A stretch of 64,000 nucleotides of DNA, from the NCBI GenBank assembly GCA_037447605.1, contig CM074812.1, positions 310,001-374,000 on the forward strand, given 5' to 3'. Positions within the stretch are counted from its first letter, which is position 1. The number at the start of each line of letters is the position of its first letter. The stretch is from Zygnema circumcarinatum SAG 698-1b. Its lineage: Eukaryota; Plantae; Zygnematophyceae. Positions 45,997-54,900 of this stretch are shown here, in pieces. The position numbers and the translations under genes were made by a program. A model generated the notes under the pieces. It was not told the origin of the DNA and searched no databases. It saw nothing but the letters and a program-made list of their open reading frames with translations.

Positions 45997-48900
45997 CACC
46001 TCGAGATTTTTCACAAACTGCGAAGCCTGACGACTGTCCAATCCAAGAAGGGGCGCGTCAAAAAACAGCACTGACGGATTCGCAGACAGTTCCACGGCAG
46101 TTAAAATCCGTTTAACTTTCTCCATAGAACCTCCGCCCTTCACAAGAGCGTTGAGCACCTGCTTCCTTTGACTCCAAACTCCCACACACCGAAGAATCTG
46201 GAAAAAAAAAAAAAAAAATTAGAATTAGAAACTAGGGCTAAAATTCTTTGAGAAGTCTGACAAAACTAGGCTTTCCAAACCATTAATGTTTCAACGTCTT
46301 ATACACATATGATTTTTTATTTTTTTTTTATTTTTTTTTGAAGTTGTAAAGGAGCATGGTCTACCCACCTCCTCCACAAGGCTCATTCTCTGCTCTCTCG
46401 TCACCTCCCGCGGTAAATTCATGGCTGCTCTATAGAGCATATTTTCTTCCACAGTTAAGTATGGAGGGTATACTTCTGCCCTATGAATGTATCCTGTTGC
46501 GCGGATCCATGTCGTTCTAGTTCGAGGAAATCCGTTCACCAGAACGCTCCCCCCTATGCGTCCATTAATTCTCCTCCCTGCCGTCATAGAGTATGAAGAG
46601 TTTCAGAATTCATGGGTTTTGGTTTTAGGATTTGGGGTTTTCGGAAAGTTTTAGGGTTAAGGTTAGCTGTTGAGTCTGAAGGGTTTGGAGAAGAGAGACG
46701 TACAGAGAGACTGAGGAATCGGAGGAAGGGAGAAGACAGTAGGGAGTGGAAGGTAAGAGCGGAAGTAAGAGCGAGAAGAGGGGGTGAAGAGAAGAAAAGA
46801 AAAGAGAGAGTTGCTTGCTAGGCAATCAAACATAACGTGCAAGAAAGAGCGTGAGAGAGAGAGCGAGAGAAAGAGCGAGACAGAAAGGAAGAGAGAGGAA
46901 CGAGATTGACAGAGTGAAAGTGACAGAGAGGTAGTGGGAGGGAGAGGGAGGGAGAAAGCGAGACAGCAAGACAGATAGGGGAAGAGGTCGAGAGAGAGGG
47001 AGAGAGACAAAGAGAGAGGGAAAGAAAAAGAGAGAGAAAGAGAGAGAGAGAGAGAGAGAGAGAGAGAGAGAGAGAGAGAGAGAGAGAGAGAGAGAGAGAG
47101 AGAGAGAGAGAGAGAGAGAGAGAGAGAGAGAGAGAGAGAGAGAGAGAGAGAGAGAGAGAGAGAGAGAGAGAGAGAGAGAGAGAGAGAGAGAGAGAGAGAG
47201 AGAGAGAGAGAGAGAGAGAGAGAGAGAGAGAGAGAGAGAGAGAGAGAGAGAGAGAGAGAGAGAGAGAGAGAGAGAGAGAGAGAGAGAGAGAGAGAGAGAG
47301 AGAGAGAGAGAGAGAGAGAGAGAGAGAGAGAGAGAGAGAGAGAGAGAGAGAGAGAGAGAGAGAGAGAGAGAGAGAGAGAGAGAGAGAGAGAGAGAGAGAG
47401 AGAGAGAGAGAGAGAGAGAGAGAGAGAGAGAGAGAGAGAGAGAGATAGAGAGAGAGAGAGAGAGAGAGAGAGAGAGAGAGAGAGAGAGAGAGAGAGAGAG
47501 AGAGAGAGAGAGAGAGAGAGAGAGAGAGAGAGAGAGAGAGAGAGAGAGAGAGAGAGAGAGAGAGAGAGAGAGAGAGAGAGAGAGAGAGAGAGAGAGAGAG
47601 AGAGAGAGAGAGAGAGAGAGAGAGAGAGAGAGAGAGAGAGAGAGAGAGAGAGAGAGAGAGAGAGAGAGAGAGAGAGAGAGAGAGAGAGAGAGAGAGAGAG
47701 AGAGAGAGAGAGAGAGAGAGAGAGAGAGAGAGAGAGAGAGAGAGAGAGAGAGAGAGAGAGAGAGAGAGAGAGAGAGAGAGAGAGAGAGAGAGAGAGAGAG
47801 AGAGAGAGAGAGAGAGAGAGAGAGAGAGAGAGAGAGAGAGAGAGAGAGAGAGAGAGAGAGAGAGAGAGAGAGAGAGAGAGAGAGAGAGAGAGAGAGAGAG
47901 AGAGAGAGAGAGAGAGAGAGAGAGAGAGAGAGAGAGAGAGAGAGAGAGAGAGAGAGAGAGAGAGAGAGAGTTACATGCAAGGCAATTGAGTAGTGTCGTT
48001 TTCCCCGTTCCCGGAGCTCCGGTGATAGCCAAAACCTCTCCGGGGCGGGCCCATCCGGAAATGTCCGAAAGAAGGGGCCGAGCGTTTCTTGCGCCAGGTG
48101 GCATCATCTCATAGGACAGTCCGTGCCAGGAGAGAGTGAGCTTCTGGAAAGGGAGAGAACCACTATGATGAAATTGCAATCCTGGGCCACCCTCCAAATC
48201 CTCCTCCTCCTGCTGTGTGTGGCTCTCCCCCTCTCTCCTTCTCTCCCTCATCTCCGCTCTCTCTCCCTTCCCTGCTCCTTCCCTTCCTCTCACTCTCTTT
48301 CTCCTCTCCTCTTTCCGCTCTCTTCCCTCCTCTCCCTCGTCTTCACCTCCCTCCTCTCCCTCCCCTCCCTCTCTTCTACCTCCCTCCTTGAGGTCTCCTC
48401 TTTTGGTTTCTAAGAAGTGAAGCTCCACCGATCCTCTCTCTCCCGCACTCCTCTCTCCCTTTTCCGCTCTCACTTTTCCCGAACTTTGAGGCGAAGATTT
48501 TTTCTTCAAAGAATCCCAATAACCCTCCTCTCCCAAAATTTCCTGCTTCATCACAAAGTATGTCATAAAGTTCCAAAGCACTATCCATGTGACGATGACG
48601 AGTGGGCCTACCCAAAAAATGCAAAGGTGAAAATTCCACTTATACAATTTCAGGTAGGCCAAACCCACACTATCATTGGGGTATATCTCGCATATGGGGA
48701 GATTAGGGTTTCCCAAGTTTTCAGTACATGGGATATTCCATTTGGAGCTTCTGAATTCATTTACAATCACCATTTGACTGGCCCATTGCATGGGGTCTAT
48801 CCAATATAGCCATATATAATAGCCCCTTATTTGGTCAACAGAAGCTAAAAAATGGGCGAAAAGAAGGAAAAGTGGCATTCCGAGAGCAGCTCTAATGTTG

Positions 48901-51900: not shown

Positions 51901-54900
51901 TGAGTGGGATTGCTTCCAGCTTGACTCCTTCCATAGAGTGGGGTCCATCCACCCATAGCTGCTGCCTGCGGGAGGGACTCTCTACCACTCTCCTCACATC
52001 GCGGTAGTGTTCCGATCTCTCATAGGCGGAAGCTACAACCCCATCTCAGCCAAACAAAAAATAAGAAAAATAAATACAAAAACAGACAGGGAAATAGAAC
52101 TACAGCTCGAGAAATCCGTGAGTTGAAACAATGGAAACCACGCAAAACAAAGGGGGGGGGGGGGAGAAGAAAAAGAGAAAGGGAATGTTTTTGGCTGAAG
52201 AAAGAGGATGGGAGGGAGGGAGAGAGGGAGGGAGGGAGGGGGAGAAGGGAGAGGAAGCGAGAGAGTGGGAGAGAGTGAGAGATGCCGAGAGAGGGCGGGA
52301 GAGGAAGAGAGAGGGAGAGGGAGAGGAAGAGAGAGAGGGGGAGAGAGGGAGGGAGAGAGAGAGAGAGAGTGCCAGTACCGAAGTCCTCCAAAGTCATCGC
52401 TTGAAATCCTTCCTGGAGAAATCTCCTTCCAGCTGAGGAGGTCACCTCAGTCAGAAATTCCGGAAAGTTCATTTGCCGTGGTTTTACATACCTACCCAAA
52501 CCTCACACATTCATAAATCCGTAGAACCCTAAAAACAATAAAAAAAACTCAGAACACTAAAATTTTAACAATCTACCGATCCAACCGATCCCTTCAATCC
52601 CTCTCCAAAAACGAAACGACAAACGAAAGTATATACTTCACCAGTAAAGAAATGTCAATAGAAAACTCAATAAAATGACAGATGTAATAATACAGCATTT
52701 GCCCTAAAAACCCTTAAAACCCTAAATTAAAGTATAGGAGCTTTACCCGAGTTTCTCGAAATGCATGGCCGCGTCTTGGGTCGGACCTTGGTACATGATT
52801 TGACCAGAATTCATGACTAAGACTCGGTCAAACAAGTCATAAATTTCCTGACCAGGTTGAACCAGGGAGCAGCAAACTGCGGTTTGCCGGACCCGAGTGA
52901 AAATTCGAATCATTGCTAAAATTTCATAGGTGACTGCTCCGTCAAAAAATGGGCTGATTTGGTCAAAAAAAAGCACCTGCACCACCGATTTAGAGACACT
53001 TTTCAGGTTTGTAAAGGCTTCAAACCCTAAAACAAGCTTCAAATTGTCAAAAAAAAATGTCAAATTTCATTCATTTCATTGTTGTTAACAGAAAGAATAG
53101 TAAGAAAAACTCGAAATCTTACCCCATATACTCCCACCATTAGCTCAGCCACTGTCAGCCGATGTCTCTCCTCGGGAGTTATTGTACATTGAGTTGGTTT
53201 TCCAACCAAAATTTCGGCACATTTTTTTAAGCCCAACATCAATATTCTGCTTTCGAGCATTGGGTCTTCTCCCTCTATCGATGTCTGTGCGAGAGTGTCA
53301 CGTAACGCTCTCACTTCATCCATTGCTCTTATATTCGCTCCGTTTGTAAAACTTCTCGCGAATTCAAGAGTTTCTCGGACAGTCAGAGTGCTTAAATGGG
53401 TATCACATTGGAATCCAACTCCTGCAACTTTATATATGTTGATTTCGTTTAACGGATTTCCGTTATATGAGATGGAACCGGTGGAGGGTTTGACTCGCCC
53501 AGCAGCTACTTTGTGGAAAGTCGACTTTCCGCAACCTGCATGCTTGAAAGGAGGGGACGGGTAAGTGGGGTTTCACTTTGGGAAGGGAGCATTCAAAGGG
53601 GGTAATTGAAATCAGTGCTTCGATTCATTGAAGATCAGCGGCGTATAAGTACGGATTTCGACTTCTAGTATGTGATGTGGAAGCTAAGAATTGAAACTTC
53701 CTATTGACAGGTTTCGTTGTAATTGTGAAGGAGAAATGAGGGAAGAGATGAGGAAGGACGATGCAAAGAGAGAGAGAGACAGAGAGAGAGAGAGAGAGAG
53801 AGAGAGAGAGAGAGAGAGAGAGAGAGAGAGAGAAAGAGAGAGAGAGAGTGAGAGTGAGAGTGAGAGAGGGAGAGAGAGAGAGAGAGAGAGAGAGAGAGGG
53901 CTAACCTGCAGGTCCTAATACCAGGGTCATACTCCCGGGCATCAAATACCTGATCGCCCGCAAACCCAAAAATACACAAAACAAACCCAACATTCATCTT
54001 ACGGAAAAAAAAAAAAAATGAAACGTCAGAGATGACAACAAAATCTCATGCAACAACAGAAACATGCTCTCCTTAGAGATATTTCTCATCAAATTGGTAT
54101 TGTTCGGACATAGATTTCGAGGATTAAAATTATCGAGGAGAGAGATGTGAAGAGAGAATCAGTACTCACCCTGTGACGCTCTTTAAAACATCCACTGACT
54201 TTTTCTTCGGTTTCAAAAGTAGCGATTTCAGCCAATGCAAGCCCTGACATTGGGGAGGAGGGGGAGAGAGAGAGAGAGAGAGAGAGAGAGAGAGAGAGAG
54301 AGAGAGAGAGAGAGAGAGAGAGAGAGAGAGAGAAAAAGAGAGAGAGAGAGAGAGAGCGAGAAAGAGAGAATGAGAAGTGAGAAAAGAAGAATGGTTACGG
54401 CTCTATGATAACAGAAAGGTAAAACAAGATAGTTCACAGGAAAAACTAAGTTTGATAAAGAAAACTTATGGCCTGTTCTCTCACAAAGAGGAGTGAAAAT
54501 TTTATGGGCTTACCGCCGTTGCAAAGTTTTCGTGCCCTGACCGGCCAATCAAAGCCTCCAAAGTGAAGGACACGTCTTGAAGCTTCACAATCTGCAGGCG
54601 AAAGAGAAGAAACAAGGGGAAAAAAATGCACAAAATGTAAATACATACAAACAAATATATGTTAAAATGCATGTCATATTATGCATATAAACAAACATGT
54701 AACACGAAAATTGAAATTCTGTTAAAAAAATCGAATGTTGATCAGATTTATTTGAGTCGCTTTAACGCTTCTTCAGCTTGCTCTTTGAAGTTCAGAAGGG
54801 TCTCCATTTATAGCCGACTTCAATTCACCCATTTGATTACCTTTCTGATTTAGAATTTGTAGCTCAACAGGTAAATTAGTTGCTGCTCATCATACCGAGA

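Follow-up and report, generated by a model that had tools for sequence, protein, structure and literature searches.

A transcribed, predicted full-size V1-type ABCG gene of Zygnema circumcarinatum with non-canonical motifs at both predicted ATP sites

An "early-diverged V1-type" of full-size ABCG has been described in Chara, Klebsormidium, mosses, Selaginella, and Amborella, and was stated to be absent from angiosperms except Amborella (Cho et al. 2020; PMC8359288). The type was defined by tree position only, and the text of that study mentions neither Walker motifs nor degenerate sites. ATP-binding cassette (ABC) transporters more generally lose their function when either the Walker B glutamate or Walker A is mutated, and TAP becomes a nucleotide-gated facilitator through a change in its D-loop (PMC7756269). 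Here, we analyze an ABCG gene carried by a 64,000-nt stretch of DNA from Zygnema circumcarinatum SAG 698-1b (GenBank assembly GCA_037447605.1, contig CM074812.1, positions 310,001 to 374,000 of the forward strand), hereafter the window, in whose coordinates all positions are given. An original prediction made from the sequence alone had described this gene, at 46020-53190, as a plant transporter of the pleiotropic drug resistance (PDR) type in which both ATP-hydrolysis sites look dead. The favored reading, to which we give a probability of about 0.6 with description and mechanism taken jointly, is that of a transcribed V1-type ABCG with non-canonical sites, which would bind ATP without useful hydrolysis and serve in a role other than that of a pump.

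All the motif strings quoted in the original prediction were located by reading out the sequence, on the minus strand and at or near where it had placed them. In nucleotide-binding domain 1 (NBD1), the Walker A motif GPAGCGKST is intact, with its Lys, and is split by an intron (53915-53906 and 53535-53519). The Q-loop GFQCDTH (53416-53396) keeps its Gln, and the H-loop region reads SLVQP, with a Gln as in all PDR-type NBD1s. The signature (53185-53153) is devoid of SGG, as against GVSGGERHRVT in canonical paralogs. The Walker B/D-loop segment (52976-52941) reads VLFFD-Q, the catalytic Glu being replaced by a Gln encoded by CAA at 52961-52959. A Walker B Glu-to-Gln substitution is the laboratory change used to trap ABC proteins in the ATP-bound state. 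NBD2 likewise has an intact Walker A with its Lys (GAPGTGKTT, 48020-47994), so that the earlier description of both Walker A motifs was accurate. Its Q-loop reads GYIHRAEV (46494-46471), with Arg replacing Gln, and its Walker B (46071-46036) reads VLFFD-A, with Ala in place of the catalytic Glu. The corresponding codon, at 46056-46054, is GCG, not GAG or GAA, in the RNA-type contigs described below, which differ from the assembly at no base. The NBD2 signature (46134-46102) had also been counted as a mark of a dead site. It does deviate, yet with Ser and Glu retained as in the PDR-type G[LI]SxE it is close to the normal form of canonical relatives; it is the mildest of the deviations and the weakest of these marks.

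Assuming a head-to-tail NBD dimer, site 1 (NBD1 P-loop and Walker B with the NBD2 signature) carries the Glu-to-Gln change. Site 2 (NBD2 P-loop, Walker B, and Q-loop with the NBD1 signature) combines Glu-to-Ala with the losses of the Q-loop Gln and of SGG. By the usual motif criteria, both sites would be non-hydrolysing, as had been proposed, on the strength of the D-Q and D-A pairs, the NBD2 Q-loop Arg, and the lost NBD1 SGG; neither should turn over ATP at a normal rate. Because both P-loops are intact, both sites can probably still bind nucleotide (PMC7756269).

The gene is larger than first thought. It extends on the minus strand from about 56209 to 46000, and the 3' third is absent from the window. 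Gene order was established by tblastn with six full-length relatives, and exon edges were read from the DNA at each junction. The exon-bearing pieces with the motif strings were also seen in a stop-to-stop reading of the three minus frames. The tblastn blocks run colinearly from about 55690 to 46000, in the order N-terminal block, NBD1, linker, extra domain, transmembrane domain 1 (TMD1), and NBD2. E values for matches to homologs range from 1e-23 to 1e-34 per exon, and the alignment is by this measure far beyond chance. The resulting model comprises 14 exons, 13 introns, and 1354 codons, open apart from one 1-nt break. Its features, with two others of the locus, are the following:

Exon 1, 55418-56209, minus strand: N-terminal extension; tblastn with P0001, P0004, P0005, and P0015 at 55693-55412, frame, GT donor.
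Exon 2, 54514-54591, minus strand: matches the QIVKFKDLTF block of the homologs; AG and GT sites, phase 0.
Exon 2b, 54170-54243, minus strand: homologous to about residues 140-170 of P0001; AG and GT sites.
Exon 3, 53906-53949, minus strand: first half of the NBD1 Walker A; tblastn, splice sites.
Exon 4, 53123-53535, minus strand: second half of Walker A (GCGKST), Q-loop, and NBD1 signature; Pfam ABC_tran at 1.3e-7, phmmer to P0001 at 6.9e-23.
Exon 5, 52747-52976, minus strand: NBD1 Walker B, D-loop ISPFFD, and H-loop region CCSLVQPG; tblastn at 1e-14 to 1e-17, codons.
Exon 6, 52379-52491, minus strand: end of NBD1 and start of the linker; tblastn, splice sites.
Exon 7, 51900-52044, minus strand: linker and first strand of the PDZ-like insert; tblastn, GC donor.
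Exon 8, 51059-51332, minus strand: most of the insert with predicted PDZ fold; alignment to the inserts of 21 family members.
Exon 9, 50689-50838, minus strand: start of TMD1; tblastn, splice sites.
Exon 10, 49638-49891, minus strand: TMD1, carries the frame break; frame bookkeeping.
Exon 11, 47975-49061, minus strand: rest of TMD1, linker, and start of NBD2 with Walker A (48020-47994); tblastn at 1e-30, end of an RNA contig.
Exon 12, 46369-46577, minus strand: NBD2 Q-loop region; RNA-type contigs spliced at both ends, tblastn.
Exon 13, 46000-46197, minus strand: NBD2 signature, Walker B, and D-loop LLGLD, followed by a GT donor; RNA-type contigs with no other letters.
Microsatellite (GA)n, 46842-47970, no strand: 1.13 kb, the greater part of the intron separating exons 11 and 12; Tandem Repeats Finder.
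Assembly gap, 45536-45635, no strand: run of 100 N, 365 bp downstream of exon 13.

The start codon of exon 1 is provisional, being the first ATG of the open frame, and the linker in exon 11, rich in Glu, Arg, and Gly, may hide an intron. All intron acceptors are AG. The donors are GT with one exception, a predicted GC after exon 7 (51898-51899), where no other choice of donor preserves the frame. Shorter GA- or GGA-rich arrays occur in nearly all the remaining introns. The NBD1 exon matches Pfam ABC_tran, the TMD1 exons align at 1e-30 to the ABC2_membrane regions of the homologs, and the NBD1, TMD1, NBD2 order is, over the visible exons, that of the reverse topology; all full-length relatives also have a TMD2. 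By its sequence, the locus is thus a predicted full-size (NBD-TMD-NBD-[TMD]) ABCG, PDR-like gene.

The gene is spliced and transcribed. Four runs, typed "RNA?" or "?" and RNA-like by their intron-free content, were placed on 45636-46841. The contigs, with a word depth of 190-250 (about 9 in the 2019 run), cover 46369 to 46577/81 joined to 46000-46193, that is, exons 12 and 13 in spliced form. The upstream contig has a loose end, at 46581, which reads ...GKTTLLNCL and corresponds to the end of exon 11. Together with one mismatch in the last four aligned bases, it fixes the exon 11/12 junction as ...NCLAW/RRING (slash, splice site), which corrects the AGRR previously read after the NBD2 Walker A. 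For the interval 45973-46602, 0.62-0.71 of the words are present in runs from a single 2024 study. Farther upstream, many same-organism runs contain 0.73 of the sampled 31-mers of 52746-53572, the RNA-type runs ranging from 0.73 to 0.94. By our own count, the 31-mers lying wholly within exons 4 and 5 amount to 0.73 of this interval, and the share is therefore as expected for spliced mRNA without the intron.

Past the GT donor at 46000, every contig continues into non-adjacent sequence, the extension measuring 154-1027 nt in the runs from 2024 and 1720 nt in that from 2019; the contigs concerned include records of 1900 nt (run X20) and 1462 nt (X25). The initial 30 bases past the donor translate in frame as HIATAMERTL and have no match in the window with up to three mismatches allowed. 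Searches of both strands of the 64 kb with the C-terminal parts of five homologs retrieved no TMD2 or NBD2 H-loop coding sequence and gave paralogous matches to TMD1 only. The 100-N gap is likely the site of the missing exons encoding these regions. Since the transcripts run on into sequence absent from the window, with a gap nearby and no TMD2 in the 64 kb, the gene is not truncated in the organism; its last third (NBD2 H-loop and TMD2) is missing from the assembly. Contigs of low depth (6-17, against about 200 for the exons) at 45715-46021 pass from exon 13 directly into the downstream intron, which a minor fraction of unspliced pre-mRNA could explain.

The original prediction also held that exon phases are preserved and that TMD1 is intact. 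This applies to the 1354 codons at large and fails at one place in exon 10, where the assembly is one base short between 49664 and 49652 (GTGGGGGGGGCGCCT), within a stretch containing eight consecutive G. As assembled, the frame of this exon ends at a TAG at 49645-49643. The next frame reads YSIAE/AVIW across the splice, fitting the family consensus PFSLxE-AT.W found in all relatives. Beyond the break, 498 codons are open and homologous and the splice sites are all intact. We favor an assembly indel over a young strain-specific frameshift, because the assembly can be shown to lack sequence in this very region, given the 100-N gap and the absent 3' exons. Rescue of exon 10 by alternative splicing was considered and rejected: the sole in-frame GT, after ...AHF, is a poor donor, and its use would delete about 12 conserved residues.

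A HMMER search of the NBD1 exon against 1.84 billion representative proteins gave 408 matches, the best being P0001, with 39% identity over the whole exon. The relatives are streptophyte proteins from Closterium, Spirogloea, Mesotaenium, Chlorokybus, Riccia, Marchantia (MpABCG27), and Calypogeia, and also from Selaginella, Diphasiastrum, Adiantum, Cryptomeria, Amborella, and many angiosperms. The product of the Zygnema gene itself seems to be missing from this collection. Among the same 1.84 billion representatives there is no ortholog close enough for a ratio of nonsynonymous to synonymous substitutions, full-length relatives reaching at most about 40-47% identity and short fragments about 54%.

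We aligned 92 full-length proteins with MAFFT FFT-NS-2. Trees were built with FastTree and with IQ-TREE (LG+G4, SH-aLRT). In both trees, the whole family has a support of 100 and forms a group distinct from the usual plant PDRs and from PDR-like proteins of oomycetes, euglenids, and others. The family consists of a canonical set C, of clade A (support 100), found in land plants only, and of clade B (support 100), with A and B grouped together at 99. Set C comprises Riccia P0004 and Chlorokybus P0013 and, by similarity, proteins of Marchantia, Calypogeia, Spirogloea, and Closterium. Clade B spans zygnematophyte algae, liverworts, lycophytes, and ferns, and the Zygnema gene lies inside it, as the first branch with IQ-TREE and paired with Closterium with FastTree. 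The tree position, in a group with Selaginella, Amborella, Marchantia, Riccia, and charophyte proteins, identifies the gene as a member of the V1-type family (Cho et al. 2020), which diverged early among streptophytes, and not as an ordinary V3-type plant PDR; the initial classification thus stands as far as a full-size, PDR-like ABCG is concerned. As clade A is present in Magnolia, Vitis, Eucalyptus, Hevea, Camellia, grasses, and others, the statement that Amborella is the only angiosperm with V1-type proteins (PMC8359288) no longer holds.

The deviant motifs extend to the relatives. According to the motif tables, similar site losses are found in Closterium, Spirogloea, Mesotaenium, Riccia, Marchantia MpABCG27, Diphasiastrum, and Adiantum. 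Throughout clade B, the NBD1 signature follows the pattern [ST][IL]Tx[DN]E[RK]HR[LV][TS], to which the Zygnema protein conforms; in NBD2, the Q-loop is without its Gln and the H-loop mostly without its His. The residue after the NBD1 Walker B Asp is Gln in Zygnema, Adiantum, Diphasiastrum, and two transcript-derived proteins, Glu in Spirogloea and Mesotaenium, Asn in Riccia, His in Marchantia, and Arg in Closterium. After the NBD2 Walker B Asp, several proteins have Glu, the ferns Asn, one protein Gly, and Zygnema Ala. In clade A (P0028 and P0170-P0218, from lycophytes, ferns, conifers, and many angiosperms), by comparison, a Gln follows the NBD1 Walker B Asp in all of the 41 proteins (41/41). 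The other deviant residues of this clade are conserved as well: the NBD1 signature is [AG]ISDxDRQKLT, the NBD2 P-loop GGSKxSKxT, and the NBD2 Q-loop residue Lys or Arg. Across land plants, the NBDs of clade A proteins are 55-60% identical to one another, a value equal to or higher than that of TMD1. Given this identity and the invariant Gln, the deviant sites are therefore under purifying selection. Canonical and deviant paralogs coexist in Riccia (P0004), Spirogloea (P0250), and Calypogeia, which, together with the conserved deviant residues, argues for selection on a changed nucleotide site and not for decay. On these comparisons, the degenerate sites are a trait of the family that dates back at least to the divergence of zygnematophyte algae from land plants, and not private decay.

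Two further features characterize the family. Exon 1 holds a conserved block common to family members, present in clades A and B and in set C; in this block, the Zygnema protein is 32% identical to clade B, versus 12% to V3 PDRs. An insert of about 100 residues lies between NBD1 and TMD1 in the Zygnema protein (51059-52044, minus strand) and in the same three groups. We modeled the homologous Spirogloea insert (P0005:497-602) with AlphaFold2 from a 22-sequence alignment that includes exon 8 of the window, with a predicted local distance difference test (pLDDT) score of 77.6. A Foldseek search of the PDB with this model returned only PDZ domains among the top 50 matches, with template modeling (TM) scores of 0.5-0.69. 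The Pfam PDZ profile gave weak matches in 3 of the 22 inserts, the best with an E value of 0.007 and none at the gathering score. The usual PDZ loop P-L-G-[LV] reads H-S-M-E-G-V in the Zygnema insert. The insert is thus predicted by modeling to have a PDZ-like fold. The N-terminal extension and the PDZ-fold insert, both of which are defined here and not by Cho et al. (2020), set the V1-type family apart from ordinary plant and fungal PDR pumps. What would be new here is the site degeneracy and the PDZ insert, the V1-type lineage itself having already been named (PMC8359288). We found no literature on degenerate sites or PDZ domains in plant full-size ABCGs, in a search whose coverage was incomplete, so that an earlier description is possible. 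MpABCG27 was likewise not found in the literature searched.

Elsewhere in the window and on the same strand, a separate neighboring gene at about 36136-36720 (minus) is marked by an open frame with the class-3 lipase signature GHSLGGSLA.

According to the mechanism that we propose, the ATP sites of clade B would have become non-canonical before zygnematophyte algae and land plants diverged. ATP would serve as a ligand whose binding holds or switches the NBD dimer and would not be consumed as fuel at a useful rate. The protein would then be no primary pump but a facilitator, channel, receptor, or scaffold that depends on nucleotide, and the PDZ domain would be a likely place for partners to dock. 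Taken alone, this mechanism, in which ATP binds and stabilizes or switches the dimer without being split at a useful rate, is in our estimate slightly short of an even bet. The structure of the gene, its transcription, the states of its motifs, its clade membership, their conservation, and the PDZ-like fold of the insert rest on direct analysis, and ATP binding without hydrolysis, like any non-pump role, is inferred from them. Several observations weigh against the reading as a whole. The exon 10 frameshift is present in the assembly, and the NBD2 H-loop and TMD2 lie outside the sequence seen. The runs used as RNA evidence are typed only as "RNA?" or "?". The Zygnema branch is long (0.91 changes per column), which relaxed constraint could also account for. 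Finally, several relatives in clade B still have a glutamate at one or both Walker B positions (Spirogloea; NBD2 of Riccia and of Marchantia), so hydrolysis may still matter in the family.

These retained glutamates also speak for the most serious alternative, that of a primary active pump relying on slow or non-canonical hydrolysis, through another acidic residue, water activation, or rescue from the unseen NBD2 H-loop region. TMD1 is moreover conserved and pump-like, with ABC2_membrane in the homologs and 36% identity between the Zygnema protein and clade B, and residual ATPase activity has been reported for ABCB1 double Walker B mutants (PMC7756269). Nevertheless, both glutamates, the NBD2 Q-loop Gln, and the NBD1 SGG are gone from the Zygnema protein, losses which we have reckoned as at least two hits per composite site, and we regard a pump as unlikely. 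Less probable still is a young pseudogene of the sequenced strain, with a real exon 10 frameshift and non-productive transcripts. The 1-nt break with its in-frame stop and the long terminal branch are what such a gene would present. However, the deviant motifs are clade traits rather than signs of decay, transcripts downstream of the break are abundant and correctly spliced, the homologous frame and splice sites persist there, and an indel is plausible in so incomplete a region of the assembly. Of the decay envisaged as an outcome in the original prediction, one possible 1-nt lesion is what is left. The possibility that the "dead" motifs stem from a mistaken choice of exons or frame is refuted: the exons are fixed by homolog alignments, by canonical splice sites, and, for NBD2, by spliced contigs. 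The transcribed, V1-type ABCG with non-canonical sites is thus the reading that we retain. Its extension to the whole lineage is more tentative. An ancient PDZ-bearing branch of full-size ABCGs, ranging from streptophyte algae to flowering plants, may have given up hydrolysis at both sites. Its members might then be ATP-bound or ATP-gated channels, receptors, or scaffolds, with the Zygnema gene possibly among the clearest natural examples.

If true, two non-canonical sites kept over hundreds of millions of years would amount to a natural experiment on what ATP binding alone does in the ABCG fold, in genomes where canonical paralogs stand beside the non-canonical family members. The Glu-to-Gln change found in all 41 clade A proteins is, in nature, the same as the ATP-trapping laboratory mutation, and the PDZ insert hints at partner proteins. 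The family is found in many crops and trees, where its members are automatically annotated as "pleiotropic drug resistance protein," a probably misleading annotation. We know of no Arabidopsis member.

Among known systems, the V1-type ABCGs (PMC8359288; including MpABCG27 and the Selaginella "ABCG31-like" entries) belong by phylogeny to the same family as the Zygnema gene. The closest solved structures to the NBD1 exon are those of Pdr5 and Cdr1 (PDB 7p03 and 9s2c), and only weakly so (E values of 4e-5 for Cdr1 and 1e-4 for Pdr5). Like the predicted Zygnema protein, these are full-size ABCGs of reverse topology with a natural degenerate ATP site bearing a residue other than Glu after Walker B. 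In Pdr5 and Cdr1, however, degeneracy is confined to one composite site and the second works as a fast ATPase, whereas both sites of the Zygnema protein are devoid of the catalytic Glu; nor do they possess the PDZ insert or such an N-terminal extension. CFTR (ABCC7) and SUR1/2 (ABCC8/9) use nucleotide binding for gating or regulation and not for pumping, and have lost the catalytic Glu in NBD1 (PMC7756269). Unlike the Zygnema protein, they are ABCC proteins of the type I exporter fold that keep one hydrolytic site, and the homology is restricted to the NBDs. In the TAP1/2 D-loop mutant (cited in PMC7756269), ATP binding permits downhill movement of the substrate without productive hydrolysis, in an engineered ABCB heterodimer and not a natural ABCG. 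By analogy, CFTR, SUR, and this mutant would be the functional precedents for a non-pump mechanism. The canonical V1 paralogs (Riccia P0004, Chlorokybus P0013, and Spirogloea P0250) share the architecture of the Zygnema protein, including the PDZ insert and the N-terminal extension, and differ from it in their full set of motifs: GVSGGERHRVT, LDEISTGLD, EQND, LDEPTSGLD, and TIHQPS.

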